A stretch of DNA of 64,000 nucleotides from the NCBI GenBank assembly GCA_905178155.1, contig CAJINV010000002.1, positions 12,409,621 through 12,473,620 of the forward strand, read 5' to 3'. This document shows, piece after piece, positions 30,477 to 35,356 of this stretch; the first letter of the stretch is position 1, and each line of letters starts with the position of its first letter. This DNA comes from Amoebophrya sp. A120 (Eukaryota > Protista > Dinoflagellata). The position numbers and the translations under genes are program-made. Below the pieces are notes generated by a model. It ran no database searches. It was not told the origin of the DNA and was given only the letters and a program-made list of their open reading frames with translations.

Positions 30477-30882
30477 AGGATCTGCACCGGATCTCCATAC
30501 GCTCGCACGAAGTGCTAGACACTGCTCAGTATCATATCAAGCTGAAGAACTTCCATTCACTTTTTTGCATTGCACAGGGCAGATTCCGAGGCCACGGTTT
30601 GCTGCGAGAACCCATCTAGACGAGATATGCGAGGCAATTCTTCCTCGAACAACCTCCGCAAAACACGTTTTTCGTTACTGCAAGAGATCTCGGTTTCATT
30701 TTCTTTTCCTCGTCATGCCCGACCCGTCTGGCAACGACGCGAATTTGTAAAATGAACTTGAAGTTTCTAATTGTCTATTTTCTATGAATTCGCGGTCTCC
30801 GCTTGAAGGGTTTGCTTTCTACTGCTAGTTCGAGAAAAACACTGTGTGGCAAAAACGTCTTTGGCTACCTGAAGAAACGAGC

Positions 30883-32874
30883 ATGTATTTCGTCCGGTCG
30901 AGACCGTCCGATAGATACCCGAAGGCCCAATATTTTCAAAAGTCCGAAGACTAGCACTAAATAAGGAAGGGACCGCCTAGTAGCATTTCGTCCGGTCGAG
31001 GCCGTCCGATAGTCACCCGAAGGGCGCTTATTTTCTAAAGTCCGAAGACTAGCACTATATAAGGGATCGGCTAGCGTCTAGCTTCCGAGGAAGCATAATC
31101 GAATAGTCTCCGAAGAGGATTGCATGCAAGCGCTTTGATGGTGTACCTTGTGCCAACACTAAAGTAGCCTCCGAGGAGTGCAGAGATCGTTTTGGTTCGA
31201 GGTCTTTTTTTGCCGGTGGTTATCTACAAATAACTAAAAATATTAGTTCACTACCTTCAAGTCAGAGCGTACACGAACTGAGAAAACTACAAGTCAAAAT
31301 AAACAATACATTAATAGGACTCAAAAAAACGAACACTCATTGCATTTCGTCCGGTCGAGACCGTCCGACAGTCACCCGAAGGCCAGTTATTTTCTAAAGT
31401 CCGAAGACTAGCACTAAATAAGGGATCGGCTAGCGTCTAGCTTCCGAGGAAGCATAGTCGTATAGTCTCCGAAGAGAATTGAATGCAAATTTTTTTGGAG
31501 GAGAATCTAGAGCCAATACTAAAGTAGCCTCCGAGGAGTGCAGAGCTTGTTTTGGATCGAGGTCTTTTTTTGCCGGTGGATATCTACAAATCATAAGCTC
31601 ACTACCTTCGAGTCAGAGCGTAGAGCCGAGAAAATTTCAGGCCAGCATGTACGTTATAGCAAAACTTAGCTCTCTACTTTCAGGCCAAAATAAACATTAA
31701 TTGCATTTCGTCCGGTCGAGACCGTCCGATAGTCACCCGAAGGCCAATTATTTTCTAAAGTCCGAAGACTAGCACTAAATAAGGGATCGGCTAGCGTCTA
31801 GCTTCCGAGGAAGCATAGTCGTATAGTCTCCGAAGAGAATTGAATGCAAATTTTTTTGGAGGAGAATCTAGAGCCAATACTAAAGTAGCCTCCGAGGAGT
31901 GCAGAGCTTGTTTTGGATCGAGGTCTTTTTTTGCCGGTGGATATCTACAAATCATAAGCTCACTACCTTCGAGTCAGAGCGTAGAGCCGAGAAAATTTCA
32001 GGCCAGCATGTACGTTATAGCAAAACTTAGCTCTCTACTTTCAGGCCAAAATAAACATTAATTGCATTTCGTCCGGTCGAGACCGTCCGATAGTCACCCG
32101 AAGGCCAATTATTTTCTAAAGTCCGAAGACTAGCACTAAATAAGGGATCGGCTAGCGTCTAGCTTCCGAGGAAGCATAGTCGTATAGTCTCCGAAGAGAA
32201 TTGAATGCAAATTTTTTTGGAGGAGAATCTAGAGCCAATACTAAAGTAGCCTCCGAGGAGTGCAGAGCTTGTTTTGGATCGAGGTCTTTTTTTGCCGGTG
32301 GATATCTACAAATCATAAGCTCACTACCTTCGAGTCAGAGCGTAGAGCCGAGAAAATTTCAGGTCAGCATGTACGTTATAGCAAAACTTAGCTCTCTACT
32401 TTCAGGCCAAAATAAACATTAATTGCATTTCGTCCGGTCGAGACCGTCCGATAGTCACCCGAAGGCCAATTATTTTCTAAAGTCCGAAGACTAGCACTAA
32501 ATAAGGGATCGGCTAGCGTCTAGCTTCCGAGGAAGCATAGTCGTATAGTCTCCGAAGAGAATTGAATGCAAATTTTTTTGGAGGAGAATCTAGAGCCAAT
32601 ACTAAAGTAGCCTCCGAGGAGTGCAGAGCTTGTTTTGGATCGAGGTCTTTTTTTGCCGGTGGATATCTACAAGTCATAAGCTCACTACCTTCGAGTCAGA
32701 GCGTAGAGCCGAGAAAATTTCAGGTCAGCATGTACGTTATAGCAAAACTTAGCTCTCTACTTTCAGGTCAAAATAAACATTAATTGCATTTCGTCCGGTC
32801 GAGACCGTCCGATAGTCACCCGAAGGCCAATTATTTTCTAAAGTCCGAAGACTAGCACGAAAATAAACATTAAT
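30883..32874. repeat. Tandem array of 361-bp units: truncated copy 30883-30980, diverged copy 30981-31339, four near-identical copies starting 31340/31701/32062/32423, partial copy 32784-32857
   Basis: The unit start TTGCATTTCGTCCGGTCGAGACCG recurs every 361 bp. The recurring 73-aa plus-strand ORFs have the same period. Confidence 0.97.
31701..31850 (-). ncRNA. Candidate structured RNA core within each repeat unit (one representative copy)
   Basis: Terminal stem TTGCATT/AATGCAA encloses hairpins that read UCUC-UUCG-GAGA, GCUUC-CUCG-GAAGC, AGUC-UUCG-GACU, GCC-UUCG-GGU and CGGU-CUCG-ACCG on the minus strand. Confidence 0.45.
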
Positions 32875-35356
32875 AGGGCGCCCAGTCCCAGAAATACATG
32901 TTTGTCCCATTCTCGGTTTGGTTCCACCCCGGAATCCATTCGCACAGTGACGGATCCCTCCACGTGTGCGTGCCCCAGCTGGTCGTGCACTGATAGTCTA
33001 TCAAGCCGGGCGCAAAACCGGGTCCCCTCACCCTCGGCTCCCGCCATTTTACGGGTGCTTCTTCCTTATCGTGCCAAAAAATGTTGTAAATGTGCCGAAG
33101 ATTTTCACCACTGCCGATCAGGATTTGCTGGTAGTCTTCCGCAACGTGTCCGGGCGCTAGGGCAAAGCGAAAGGAGAGGTTGTACATCACGGGGAAGAAC
33201 GGCAAGCAGAGCACGCACAGTATTGCTGCCACTTCGAGTACATAGGAAATCTTCGGAAGCAGAAGGCTGGCGCTTCCGTCGTACGGCAGGAAAATCGGAG
33301 TGGATGTCGTCGAGAAGGGTCTGCGTTCGCGATCATGTCGCTGAGGAAGCAAGGAAACGAGAATCGCAAATCCACTACAGAAGATCCACGAGAACACCAG
33401 GAACAGAGCGCGAAGCCGGAAAATCATTGGTGCCCACTGCACACGCAAGGAAAGCTCCTGGGGTGAGCAGACTCCTTCTACGCCAAGAGCCTGATGACGT
33501 GCCCAGTAATGTAGAACCTCGTCGTCGAAGACCAGTTGCTCGTCCATCGTTCCAAAAATCGCAGCAGTTAACGAGATCCCTTCGCCAAAAGTAAACTGGT
33601 AGGTCTGAAAAAGTACCAACACTGCCATCGCGAGAGGAGACCACACCGCGTGTAAGACCACTTGCCACCGCGTGTTTCGCAAGCGAAAGTACTCTATCGC
33701 GTCATGGGATCCCACTTGTACACGATCGGTCTCCGTTTCGCGCATTTTAACATCTTCTTCGGCTTTGGTAGAAGAAGGAACAGCTTCTCTGGCTTCTTTG
33801 GTGCTTTCCTGTTCCATTGCACGACGAGCGTCGGCTGTGGGGCTGGGCACAGCTGCCGTGAGCATGAAGCCGACACACGGAAGTACCAACCACAAAACGC
33901 GAAGCAACATCTCCAGGGGGGAAATCCCGGAGAAATTGAGCAGAGGAGAAGCGCTGTGCCACCACGTGCGCAAGCCCGAGCACCAATGCGGATAGAGGCC
34001 GGCAATCACCGTGTAGCGAGAGAGGAGCGCACACACAGCGTAGACGATGAGGCAAGAGGTCCAGATATTTCCCGCGCTGCTGCCTTGAAACTGGCAGACA
34101 CTCGACAGAGTGCCATCGGCCGCGAACGCGTGCGGCAACAGCATGAATTTTCGCAACGGTCGCTGGCGCTGCTTGCGGAGCGCGTCGTCTGCTGCATCTT
34201 CTGTTTGTTGTTGTTCACTGTGGTCAAGAACATCTTCACTGGGGTTCTCGGGTGTCGGAAGGTAAAGTACGGGCGGGAAAAACACAAGCTTGGTGGGTAA
34301 GAGCAGACCTATCACAACAGCCCCATAGCCAAGGAGGAGAAGCACGAGCATGACGAGGAAGTCCCTGCGCATGTTCGCAAGCGAATGCGCGATTTGGTTT
34401 TGCTGTATGATCTCGCTGACTGCACCCGCACTCGCGATGCGAGCCGCGGTCGTGTTCTGGAAAACTTGCTGGGTTGCCAGCTCTTTCCGCAGGTGCCGCA
34501 CAATTTCCCCCAGTTCGCTTACCACGTCCTCCAGTCGCTCCACCTTTTGCTGCCACGCGAAGCCATCTCCAGCTTCAGTGCCGTCTTCCGCGGAAGTAGG
34601 CACAGAGTTTGCACCTTGTACTTTCTGGGGCTGGTAGTTCCTGACGACTTTAGTATTTGACGGCGTCCCTCGGTGCTGTTCCTGTTGTCCCTCTGCTAAA
34701 GGCAGACGTTCTCCGAATCCCGCTTCCAGAAATTGAACTGCGGTTCCGGGCGATCCCGGGGGTTCTTCTGCAGTTCCTTTCGCTGTAAAACTCGTGGCAT
34801 GATTGTACGCAGAGGTCGGCTCTATTTCTTCTAGTTGCTGTTGCTGCTGGAACGAGTCACGCATCTCGATTCTGTCGTCAGCAAGGTCACCCCCGGTGCG
34901 CTTTATCATTTTCTCTGTCTCGGTCTGCGCCCACTGCGCCGCGCCAGTCCCCTCGTCCTGGCTCTGCTTGATTTGCGCGAGAACACTTGCGGCCGCTTCT
35001 TCTACTTCAGCTCCTCTCCAAAACTCCGCTGCTTGTTTCTGCTTTGCGGCCACATGGTGACCGTCGACCTCCTCGGAGATTTGCGTGTTCTCGTTGGCCA
35101 AAAACACATCATGGGTCAGGCGCGTAGCCAGAAGTCGGCGCTGCTCTTTGCGGTAGTGTTCGTCTCGCTCTTCCCAGATACCTCTCCCTGCTTCAACCGG
35201 GTCACCAGTACTAGTTGAACCTGTTCTACTACTTTCCGCAGCCACTACAACAGCCTCTTCAAATAATATTGCCCAGCGAGCAGCGAAGATCGAGAGGTGG
35301 AGCGCAACGCAGCGCAGATGCGCTTTTTTGTTTTTCATTGAAGTAGGAGCACACAT
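32870..35356 (-). CDS. Signal-peptide, coiled-coil and multi-TM protein (paralog of 5287-7823)
   Basis: 828-aa ORF. Shares GTLSSVCQ, LSRYT, LEM.LR.L.LV.P..GF.LTA..PS, Q..FGEG.S and ..VLEV.A blocks with the 5287-7823 product. Confidence 0.8.
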   Translation of the reverse strand: MCAPTSMKNKKAHLRCVALHLSIFAARWAILFEEAVVVAAESSRTGSTSTGDPVEAGRGIWEERDEHYRKEQRRLLATRLTHDVFLANENTQISEEVDGHHVAAKQKQAAEFWRGAEVEEAAASVLAQIKQSQDEGTGAAQWAQTETEKMIKRTGGDLADDRIEMRDSFQQQQQLEEIEPTSAYNHATSFTAKGTAEEPPGSPGTAVQFLEAGFGERLPLAEGQQEQHRGTPSNTKVVRNYQPQKVQGANSVPTSAEDGTEAGDGFAWQQKVERLEDVVSELGEIVRHLRKELATQQVFQNTTAARIASAGAVSEIIQQNQIAHSLANMRRDFLVMLVLLLLGYGAVVIGLLLPTKLVFFPPVLYLPTPENPSEDVLDHSEQQQTEDAADDALRKQRQRPLRKFMLLPHAFAADGTLSSVCQFQGSSAGNIWTSCLIVYAVCALLSRYTVIAGLYPHWCSGLRTWWHSASPLLNFSGISPLEMLLRVLWLVLPCVGFMLTAAVPSPTADARRAMEQESTKEAREAVPSSTKAEEDVKMRETETDRVQVGSHDAIEYFRLRNTRWQVVLHAVWSPLAMAVLVLFQTYQFTFGEGISLTAAIFGTMDEQLVFDDEVLHYWARHQALGVEGVCSPQELSLRVQWAPMIFRLRALFLVFSWIFCSGFAILVSLLPQRHDRERRPFSTTSTPIFLPYDGSASLLLPKISYVLEVAAILCVLCLPFFPVMYNLSFRFALAPGHVAEDYQQILIGSGENLRHIYNIFWHDKEEAPVKWREPRVRGPGFAPGLIDYQCTTSWGTHTWRDPSLCEWIPGWNQTENGTNMYFWDWAPY

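Follow-up and report, generated by a model that had tools for sequence, protein, structure and literature searches.

The tandem 361-bp array at 30884..32874 (minus strand) of the window, that is, of the whole 64,000-nt stretch of Amoebophrya sp. A120 DNA analyzed here, represents one locally amplified member of a small repeat family that is dispersed in the genome of this species. The array is therefore not a unique locus. The explanation that fits best, a tentative one with a probability of roughly 40%, is that the family is a low-copy, retroposon-like hairpin cassette that would act at the RNA level and ride in the 3′ flanks of genes. This reading draws on the family itself, the strand asymmetry of its hairpins, the placement of its copies and their orientation with respect to ORFs, the way in which copies are truncated and the slower divergence of its cassette, each of which is directly observed.

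The tandem 361-bp periodicity described in the first-pass annotation is confirmed by TRF (30983-32862 at period 361, 5.2 copies, 94% matches, with an additional 98-bp partial repeat at 30887-31064) and by BLAST of one unit against the window. In total, the array (30884-32874) comprises five units, of which four are 361 bp long and nearly identical and one is diverged, as well as two fragments. Read from the gene side, its order is a composite first copy, four young units, an older diverged unit and an older 5′-truncated fragment. At the gene-side end, ATTAATGTTTATTTT (32860..32874), the first 15 nt of a unit, is fused without a gap to the final 79 nt of a cassette; these 15 nt follow the 3′ end of every unit and also open the 5′ region of the C7 unit, and they contain the stop codon (TAA, 32870-32872) that terminates the upstream 828-aa ORF. 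Adjoining them is an internally deleted or 5′-truncated copy (32784..32859; BLAST match 32784-32862) that contains only the 3′ part of the cassette and shares 95.7% identity with C7 copy B. The four young full-length units (31340..32783) occupy 31340-31700, 31701-32061, 32062-32422 and 32423-32783 with a mutual identity of 99.2-100%, and this 99-100% identity indicates that they were amplified very recently. The older diverged full unit (30983..31339), matched by BLAST over 30983-31286+ at 85.6%, retains 92.5% identity to the young units and 94.5% to C7 copy B within its cassette, while its 5′ region has indels and is only 81% identical to the young units. Last comes an older 5′-truncated copy of 98 nt (30884..30982; BLAST match 30884-30966) from the lineage ending in GGACGAAATACAT, with 90.8% identity to C7 copy C.

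Within unit 3, the conserved hairpin cassette of ~150-170 nt spans 31700..31872 (alignments A1-A3; 160 bits with covariance model R1). Its edges are of the AAAGCGCUUG type at the 5′ side and GGACGAAAUGCA at the 3′ side, and it recurs in every unit at an offset of 361 nt. Units in the window follow one another head to tail with zero spacer, at a fixed junction of GGACGAAAUGCA with AUUAAUG. The plus-strand T7 run reported earlier is present in the four young units, but older copies carry AAAGCGCTTG instead, and the run is, judging from these copies, a derived trait of the young units. Unit number may not be stable: contig depth in run X1, which resembles DNA in its behaviour, is ~87 on the unit and ~10 on the gene, which suggests that unit number is either unstable or collapsed. 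By this depth there would be about 8 units, where the assembly has 4-5. The array is not a coding repeat, as 361 is not divisible by 3 and the array is crossed by no ORF.

Homologous elements of 330-400 nt are found on contigs C2, C3, C4, C6, C7, C12 and C71, with further tandem arrays at C3:10210430 and C2:11056406 whose junctions differ from that in the window. Across the A120 genome, covariance model R1 recovers 29 copies at ~14 loci in three subfamilies; three weak new matches lie at C18:1109109, C366:973 and C3:4446592. The full element (330-400 nt) is non-coding, and its conserved 3′ part is the cassette of 150-170 nt, sharply bounded at both its 5′ and its 3′ edge. The number of hairpin modules differs from copy to copy, and at C7 the conserved cores are parted by spacers that differ from one another. 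Seven fragments (79, 98, 63, 40, 67, 48 and 44 nt) keep the subfamily-specific 3′ end, GGACGAAATRCAT, GGACGACACCCA or GGACGATCCCC, and thereby display the SINE-type pattern of 5′-truncated copies with a constant 3′ end over lengths of 40-98 nt. The fragment of 67 nt, which lies on C3, shares 99% identity with copies on C12, C6 and C2. Four 99%-identical copies sit in a GAATATTCGCGAA-type satellite with no recognisable gene upstream. The copies on C12, C6 and C2 are surrounded by a 15-bp direct repeat, TCCAAGGGGCTTCGG, in host DNA that is itself a periodic satellite, the three loci sharing both flanks; at the solo fragments (L077 and L078), direct repeats are absent or 3 nt long. Copies end in one of the three subfamily-specific sequences with no A-rich or microsatellite tail, and BLAST and covariance-model searches find this tail in the family itself and in no RT-encoding partner. 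There are no terminal inverted repeats, since neither terminus (ATTAATGTTYRTTTTG at the 5′ side, GGACGAAATRCA at the 3′ side) repeats the other in inverted form, and no relatives were matched in the viral and metagenome contigs scanned. A second repeat family, of ~0.95 kb, has near its 3′ end three hairpin modules of the kind seen in the cassette, each reading GCUC-CUCG-GAGC-AUAG, and shows staggered 5′ truncations and (TGATC)n tails, which are retroposon-like features.

The hairpins of the array are well above chance and strictly one-stranded. Each unit has 5-6 short hairpins with UUCG or CUCG loops, of the hyperstable YNMG tetraloop type, on the minus strand, which is the sense strand of the genes, and none on the plus strand; in direct counts per unit, the minus strand has 10 YTCG sites and 5 hairpins, and the plus strand 3 and 0. 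No shuffled sequence out of 5000 reached 4 such hairpins, and the rest of the 64-kb window holds just 4-5 per strand, none with a C-G closing pair, compared with 22 in the array. All six hairpins listed in the first-pass annotation were recovered from the minus-strand sequence, five of them with a C-G closing pair as had been claimed, and five have Watson-Crick stems of 3-5 bp, the remaining one (GCC-UUCG-GGU) including a G.U pair. In the 5′ region, ~60 nt upstream of the cassette, H0 (CUC-CUCG-GAG, then GCUAC; 31890..31899) was found by hairpin search and is kept in the window units, the diverged unit and C7 copy B. Within the cassette are H1 (UCUC-UUCG-GAGA, then CUAUA; 31827..31838), whose module CTCYTCGGAGNCTA has 45 matches in the genome against 3 for a reversed control, and H2 (GCUUC-CUCG-GAAGC, then UAGA; 31801..31814), whose stem does not vary across 13 copies; both come from the hairpin search. 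H4 (AGUC-UUCG-GACU; 31759..31770; hairpin search and pair tables) reads GAGUC-CUCG-GAUUC in subfamily 2, which forms a G.U pair when read in gene sense (minus strand). The third pair of H5 (GGCC-UUCG-GGUG; 31734..31745; pair tables) is G.U in the window unit and G-C in other subfamilies. H6 (UCG-GA-CGGU-CUCG-ACCG-GA-CGA; 31708..31729; pattern search and pair tables) spans the 22-23 nt where conservation within the family is highest and lies 5-10 nt from the 3′ end of the element; among copies its inner stem passes from G-C through G.U to A-U and from U-A through C.A to C-G. All of these hairpins lie on the minus strand, the truncated copy at 32784..32859 containing H4 to H6, and the cassette hairpins are each trailed by a linker containing UAG or UAU. 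Loops stay the same from hairpin to hairpin and stems do not, a pattern that fits selection acting on a single-stranded form (RNA) in gene sense better than it fits a DNA palindrome.

The genomic context agrees in orientation. Every long ORF around the array is on the minus strand, as noted previously, and the array adjoins the stop codon of an upstream gene (32870..35356, minus strand) encoding a predicted multi-pass membrane protein of 828 aa with no Pfam domain, a member of a large Amoebophrya-specific paralogue family. This protein has relatives only in Amoebophrya and is neither a transposase nor a reverse transcriptase, and a transposon-encoded neighbour was dismissed. Where coding context is readable, copies are always in sense orientation, 0-350 nt past the stop codon of an ORF: 0 nt in the window and at C7, 5 nt at C3:4600286, ~12 nt at C4:5193687, ~45 nt at C2:8869450, ~125 nt at C3:11389921 and 220-350 nt at C2:6735669. 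Four loci come after members of a single family of paralogous membrane-protein genes, so some of the spread is simply due to gene duplication. Five members of the 828-aa family are followed by the cassette or by hairpin modules of it; no such hairpins occur downstream of the closest paralogue of the window gene (C1:12450141) or of C4:958306. Short truncated fragments are dispersed behind unrelated genes. The copy at C4:5193687 splits two matching parts of a family member, as an intron or introner might, but it directly follows an in-frame stop codon and therefore does not show an intron.

A comparison of the window with its paralogous locus on C7 separates the cassette from its surroundings. 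Between the two loci the cassette has diverged by 5.5-16%, whereas the four-fold degenerate sites of the flanking paralogues differ at 26% (dS 0.42), making the cassette 2-6 times slower than the four-fold sites next to it. The 5′ region of the element is ~79% identical and has many indels. Two cassette lineages follow one another in the same order at both loci, and the earlier claim that the diverged copy of the array retains its stem blocks is likewise supported. Conservation extends to loops and linkers besides stems, which suggests specific recognition.

In the proposed mechanism, the element would be carried on the sense transcript of a co-oriented gene block, just past the upstream stop codon. 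The hairpin cassette, chiefly its 3′-terminal H6, may be under selection as an RNA-level module for recognition by a binding partner and for stability. Low-rate spread would proceed via an RNA copy and leave 5′-truncated copies with a fixed 3′ end, as with a non-autonomous retroposon, and local head-to-tail arrays might then grow by template jumping or unequal exchange. The ~0.95-kb family, which has the same type of hairpin module and behaves in a retroposon-like manner, speaks for this mechanism. In 'stringent' SINEs and non-autonomous non-LTR retroposons, a conserved 3′ stem-loop is recognised by the reverse transcriptase of a partner LINE, as in eel UnaL2/UnaSINE1. The A120 family resembles these elements in being short and non-coding, in having its best-conserved part, a hairpin, within a few nucleotides of a fixed 3′ terminus, and in its 5′ truncations, its subfamilies set by the 3′ tail and its dispersal over many contigs. 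It differs from them in having no demonstrated target-site duplications, in lacking an A-rich or simple-repeat tail, internal pol III promoter boxes and a partner that shares its tail, and in consisting of ~29 copies that lie in sense behind stop codons. The same points weigh against the retroposon-like reading: the copies display no demonstrable target-site duplication, they come with neither an A-rich or microsatellite tail nor an RT partner, and they are far fewer than would be usual for a mobile element. Dead retrocopies would be expected to decay neutrally, and a cassette that diverges slowly, as this one does at two old paralogous loci, would be expected of an element with a host function. 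Non-significant covariation and unremarkable folding energy, described below, also count against it. As for the genomic background, 13-24% of Amoebophrya genomes consists of repeats, mostly unclassified, as are those of A120, which include LTR and non-LTR retroelements (PMC7789003).

The possibility that the cassette is instead a host cis-acting 3′-UTR element, a fixed regulatory part of the mRNAs of the membrane-protein family and a few other genes, is doubtful. It could offer an RNA-binding protein a multivalent platform, or could block 3′-to-5′ decay, and would in this way set mRNA stability, localisation or 3′-end position; the window array would merely add sites. Sense copies 0-125 nt past the stop codon at six loci, the cassette or modules behind five members of the 828-aa family, conserved loops and linkers, and slow cassette divergence with the same two lineages in the same order in the window and at C7 are all in keeping with such a role. 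It is harder to reconcile with the four 99%-identical copies within GAATATTCGCGAA-type satellite, the truncated fragments behind unrelated genes, the two paralogues (C1:12450141 and C4:958306) that have no downstream hairpins, and the very recent amplification of the four 99-100% identical units. In layout, the family recalls bacterial REP/BIME sequences, which are likewise short hairpin repeats in gene 3′ flanks on the transcribed strand, single or clustered, dispersed and of low divergence, and which are thought to affect mRNA stability. This resemblance is an analogy of layout only, as the A120 family resides in a eukaryotic nuclear genome, has 5-6 different YNMG hairpins rather than one palindrome and comes with no RAYT-type transposase. 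A further, unlikely proposal sees in the cassette a genuinely novel functional RNA of syndinian dinoflagellates: a trans-acting RNP RNA encoded in tandem arrays and released by processing, or a post-stop-codon signal of a new kind in which YNMG hairpins and UAG linkers would mark mRNA 3′ ends in co-oriented blocks, in a lineage where U1 is undetected and most introns are non-canonical. The truncated dispersed copies would be its retro-pseudogenes.

The closure of the multibranch domain by UUGCAUU/AAUGCAA and its nested helices, proposed in the first-pass annotation, do appear in the minimum-energy fold of the young units, but they are broken in diverged copies. When folding energy was judged by whether it falls below that of dinucleotide shuffles, the whole unit was no better than shuffles (minus strand, z +0.58; plus strand, z +0.04) and the core marginally better (z -1.8 on both strands). 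When 28 pairs were scored across 13 distinct copies, 88.4% of cells proved to be paired, compared with 28-55% when the partner is slid. Most stems are invariant among these 13 copies, and the covariation that had been sought among them is not significant: 3 pairs change on both sides, a number matched by 111 of 500 shuffles. Energy and covariation together leave the global fold unsupported. Rfam searches of both strands, as had been suggested, matched no known family. The whole window gave 0 matches at the gathering threshold, the array in E-value mode gave only ceN109 (16.6 bits, E 3.7) together with a flanking SNORD14-like hit (26 bits, threshold 64), and 12 other loci gave nothing relevant. 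Three RNA-seq runs with the same species label have 0 reads on the array and on the neighbouring gene alike, and since even the gene is without reads they are no test of array transcription.

Against this background, little weight is given to a stand-alone array of small RNA genes, in which the cassette of ~150-170 nt would be a new trans-acting structured RNA with diverging spacers, processed from an intergenic transcript or transcribed separately, and laid out like the snRNA, 5S or spliced-leader arrays of dinoflagellates. The C7 cores with their differing spacers are gene-array-like, and the conserved part has sharp edges; units of a few hundred base pairs, a core of ~150 nt and variable spacers at C7 are also what dinoflagellate SL RNA, 5S rRNA and snRNA arrays have. 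The A120 family differs from these arrays in having no Rfam match, SL exon, Sm site or conserved promoter or terminator, the T7 run being derived, and in having truncated copies behind unrelated genes. Variable module number, long-range helices that are not conserved and non-significant covariation point in the same direction. The boldest version makes the cassette a substitute for U1 snRNA, which is undetected in A120 and A25 (PMC7789003) and for which the Rfam model (RF00003) reaches at best 15.5 bits genome-wide, away from the array, which it does not report. The U1 hallmarks, a single-stranded ACUUACCU-type 5′ sequence (ACYUAC, complementary to the 5′ splice site) and an Sm site (RAU3-6GR), are in no copy on either strand, and with these missing and the closing helix of the proposed four-way junction not conserved, a divergent U1 snRNA was rejected. 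A spliced-leader RNA gene, recognisable by a 22-nt exon followed by a GU donor, was set aside as well: the 21-nt DinoSL core has no match at ≤5 mismatches, the GU donor is missing from young units, and the UUGGCNCAAG resemblance is at chance level, as the last 12 nt of DinoSL with 2 mismatches match both strands of the unit and 7 unrelated sites in the window. Likewise, a kinetoplastid snoRNA cluster, suggested by the one-strand gene layout, finds neither C/D nor H/ACA boxes and the host is Amoebophrya, and a plus-strand pol III gene ending in T7 is contradicted by the older copies, which have no T-run.

It is also quite improbable that the family is a plain satellite or segmental repeat with no RNA role, its hairpins being remnants of repeated duplication of a short palindrome. 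The modules are alike (CUC-YUCG-GAG plus NCUA), so that internal duplication is plausible, energy and covariation give the global fold no support, and the X1 depth points to a unit number that is unstable or collapsed. However, the stems differ (UCUC, GCUUC, AGUC, GCC, CGGU and GCUC) and yet remain complementary, and the asymmetric loop is always YUCG on the same strand, which duplication alone cannot maintain. Moreover, the cassette evolves more slowly than neutral sites, and its position and orientation relative to ORFs are non-random.

An element acting at the DNA level is very improbable, whether through ssDNA hairpins (rolling-circle or Helitron-like, with a 3′ hairpin followed by CTAG) or through palindromes bound by proteins, acting in the promoter of LspA, the gene downstream. 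Several hairpins directly precede CTAG or CTAT, rolling-circle elements are able to form tandem arrays, and the plus-strand CCGAAGG contains the stable DNA mini-hairpin motif C-GAA-G; half of the loops (CGAG on the plus strand) misfit the GNA DNA motif, however, the 3′ terminus is not CTRR, no Rep/helicase partner is seen, and the stems differ among hairpins and hence offer no common DNA-binding site. A role as a promoter element of LspA was rejected, as no LspA homologue follows the other copies. Finally, a retrozyme or viroid-like element, whose units would give rise to a self-cleaving RNA that is cleaved into monomers and closed into circles, is scarcely credible: the family is dispersed, with non-coding units of a few hundred nucleotides, possible movement through RNA and zero-spacer, fixed-junction tandem copies in the window, but this reading, raised in the first-pass annotation, has no positive evidence, as hammerhead, twister, HDV, hairpin or other ribozyme models match neither strand of the array (E up to 10) nor seven other loci (E up to 1) in a search that covers known model classes, with a new ribozyme class outside its reach, other arrays of the family have different junctions, viral and metagenome contigs give no match, and LTR-like repeats, a primer-binding site and a polypurine tract are not seen.

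Amoebophrya combines co-oriented gene blocks with spliced-leader trans-splicing, >60% non-canonical introns and no detectable U1 (PMC7789003). If the retroposon-like cassette is real, it would constitute a new type of non-autonomous retroelement living in 3′ UTRs; if the host-element reading holds, it would be a lineage-specific signal for 3′-end formation or mRNA stability. Either reading would provide a concrete handle on transcript punctuation in the gene blocks of Amoebophrya. Even if the family is merely selfish DNA, part of the unclassified repeat fraction gains an annotation, and the window array and the C7 locus are explained as one family.

Tandem Repeats Finder resolves window positions 30983-32862 into 5.2 copies of a 361-bp period (94% matches), preceded by a 98-bp partial repeat. 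When one unit was searched against the window by BLAST, four units sharing 99.2-100% identity were returned at 31340-32783, together with an older one at 30983-31339 (85.6%) and fragments at either end of the array. YTCG occurs 10 times per unit on the minus strand and 3 times on the plus strand. Of the minus-strand sites, five are enclosed by Watson-Crick stems (3-5 bp) and one more by a stem with a G.U pair; none of the three plus-strand sites is flanked by a stem. The tandem array with six minus-strand hairpins per unit described in the first-pass annotation is thus present. Four or more such hairpins per unit occurred in 0 of 5000 shuffles, and over the remaining 62 kb of the window there are just 4-5 hairpins of this kind per strand, all lacking a C-G closing pair, as against 22 in the array; the hairpin-bearing array is therefore genuine and far beyond chance. 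In sequence run X1, which has contigs of up to 14 kb and behaves like DNA, depth across 32421-32871 is ~87 on the unit versus 10.3 on the adjacent gene, so the true array may comprise about 8 units rather than 4-5, through collapsed assembly or copy-number variation.

The array abuts an 828-aa ORF (32870-35356, minus strand), and the copy closest to this gene is a composite in which the unit's first 15 nt, containing the TAA stop of the ORF, are joined to the last 79 nt of the cassette, the conserved 3' part of the unit. The long ORFs around the array all lie on the minus strand, in agreement with the earlier assignment of gene strand. About six membrane spans are predicted for the 828-aa protein, no Pfam domain was found in it, and the protein database yields just two relatives, both from Amoebophrya sp. 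A120 and one of them encoded on contig C1 at 100% identity. At least 50 places in the 115.5-Mb A120 genome match the gene. It belongs to a large family, specific to Amoebophrya, whose products are predicted to be multi-pass membrane proteins without a Pfam domain and in which the C-terminal motif WIPGWNQTENGT is kept. A120 is a syndinian dinoflagellate with 98.5% of its genes in co-oriented blocks, spliced-leader trans-splicing, over 60% non-canonical introns, no detected U1 snRNA and mostly unclassified repeats (PMC7789003). Adjoining the array at 30765-30876 (+) is a weak SNORD14 (U14)-like match (26 bits, E 0.027, where the gathering score is 64); it lies on the strand opposite all genes and is probably due to chance.

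The repeat is not limited to the window: the array is an expanded representative of a new family of hairpin-cassette repeats with few copies. A second locus on contig C7 (C7:3285886-3286774) has three ~150-nt cassettes immediately after a paralogue of the 828-aa gene, and the stop codon of this paralogue abuts the first of them. More diverged copies at C4:5193687, C4:3958334 and C2:6735669 each follow a further paralogue from that gene family, and fragments occur at C2:8869450 and C71:5352. At the first of these C4 places (C4:5191500-5197500, minus strand), an ORF for the central membrane segments stops just before the cassette and the C-terminal segments resume ~650 nt on; this is a pseudogene, or else a gene whose unusual intron contains the element. 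A 330-400-nt element homologous to the entire window unit is found on C12 (two places), C6, C2 and C3, including additional tandem arrays, likewise short, at C3:10210430 and C2:11056406. Across the genome, the 14-nt module CTCYTCGGAGNCTA occurs 45 times versus 3 for its reversed control, and a covariance model trained on 13 distinct copies gave 29 matches at about 14 loci. Three subfamilies are set apart by their final nucleotides (GGACGAAATRCAT, GGACGACACCCA and GGACGATCCCC). At C12:275600-276500, C6:2282600-2283500 and C2:4202600-4203400, a satellite-like repeat made up of GAATATTCGCGAA and CCAAGGGGCTTCGG blocks contains copies of the element that are 99% identical and have TCCAAGGGGCTTCGG on both flanks.

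On the gene-sense strand the full element opens with ATTAATGTTYRTTTTG. The distal part of its 5' region is poorly conserved and the proximal part, which holds hairpin H0, better conserved; the cassette follows in the order H1, H2, a CUAG-rich linker, H4, H5 and H6, with a UAG/UAU-containing linker behind most hairpins. The most conserved 23-mer of the family is H6 (UCG-GA-CGGU-CUCG-ACCG-GA-CGA), with 5-10 nt separating it from the 3' end. At the window and C7 loci the two cassette lineages GGGUGACUAUCGG and GGGUAUCUAUCGG stand in the same order, which suggests that an array predates duplication of the flanking gene. Between these loci the gene has diverged to a dS of 0.42 and a dN of 0.245 (dN/dS ~0.58), with 26% of four-fold sites different over 558 codons compared, and the 5' region of the element is ~79% identical with many indels, whereas divergence between cassettes runs from 5.5% (diverged window unit versus C7 copy B) up to 16%. 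From this comparison, either the cassette is under constraint or its copies have stayed alike through conversion or repeated insertion beside old copies.

A multibranch fold with a closing helix and two nested long-range helices had been proposed for the unit. These helices are present in the young units but broken in diverged copies, and the global fold is rejected. Nor did the suggested checks of covariation and folding energy lend it support: three pairs change on both sides among 13 copies, which is not significant because 111 of 500 shuffles give as many, and whole units fold at z +0.58 and +0.04 on the two strands (the core at -1.8 on either strand). The local stems, in contrast, are almost invariant, with 88.4% of cells pairing versus 28-55% when the partner is slid (28 pairs, 13 sequences). 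Variant positions, a few of which had been said to favor plus-strand G-U pairs, yield few informative changes, and these are split by strand. H6 (G-C to G.U to A-U) and H4 and H5 (G-C to G.U) favor the hairpin strand, while another change in H6 (U-A to C.A to C-G) favors the opposite one; 24 cells pair on the hairpin strand only versus 8 on the opposite strand only. The best structural argument comes from comparing the hairpins with each other. Across the unit and other family members the stems differ (UCUC, GCUUC, AGUC, GCC, CGGU, GCUC, CAGU, CCGGU) with complementarity kept, and the asymmetric loop is always YUCG on one same strand (once UACG or UAAG). A double-stranded DNA palindrome would not preserve loop orientation. 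Since stems vary yet pair and loop orientation is constant, we accept predicted local hairpins of RNA type on the sense strand.

Some features point to mobility. The 3' end is retained and the 5' part missing in seven fragments of 40-98 nt, and one 67-nt fragment on C3 has 99% identity with copies on three other contigs and even 6 nt of 3' flank in common with them. Every copy with readable coding context follows an ORF stop in the sense direction, at 0, 0, ~12, ~45, 5, ~125 and 220-350 nt, and three of the preceding ORFs fall outside the 828-aa family. The family has no demonstrable target-site duplication, no tail and no partner with the same 3' end, and these features, along with a copy number of only ~29, count against a classical SINE. 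A second repeat family of ~0.95 kb (e.g., C1:16357250-16358330, C2:312900-315900, C4:2753500-2756500) bears three consecutive GCUC-CUCG-GAGC-AUAG hairpins near its 3' end. Three copies share a 5' start, others show staggered 5' truncations, tails are (TGATC)n or variable, and by these sequence features it behaves like a retroposon; no reverse transcriptase was found beside the repeats and no coding capacity was seen in them. One copy lies in sense orientation ~110 nt past the stop of an uninterrupted 2211-aa ORF (C1:16350505-16357140, +) that has no Pfam match at E up to 0.001.

A signal fixed in host 3' UTRs, which could occupy the same sense positions behind stops, is the next most probable reading but appears rather unlikely. 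A stand-alone RNA gene array is less probable again. The Rfam scan that had been called for, run on the window and twelve other loci, returned nothing at gathering threshold and only noise in E-value mode; the best U1 score is 15.5 bits, elsewhere in the genome; no family copy has an ACYUAC or Sm-type motif; and the DinoSL exon is absent from the copies, a 12-nt resemblance being at chance level. The plus-strand T7 run noted earlier is present in the four young units but confined to them, older copies reading AAAGCGCTTG. Among the datasets recorded as containing the locus, none is RNA. Three raw-read RNA-seq runs of 2026 under the same species label (X9-X11, ~3 million reads each) gave zero reads on the array and neighboring gene alike (1221 nt, including 730 nt of gene), a result that does not count against transcription; in these runs the parasite may be scarce or another strain. 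A plain satellite, against which the differing yet complementary stems speak, is about as improbable as the RNA gene array. The retrozyme or viroid-like origin first suggested gained no positive support, with no ribozyme model matching at E up to 10 on the array or at E up to 1 on seven other loci, and is very improbable.

The reading we prefer, at a probability of roughly 0.4, is that of a retroposon-like element that would ride on sense transcripts in the 3' flanks of genes, where its tetraloop hairpins may act at the RNA level.
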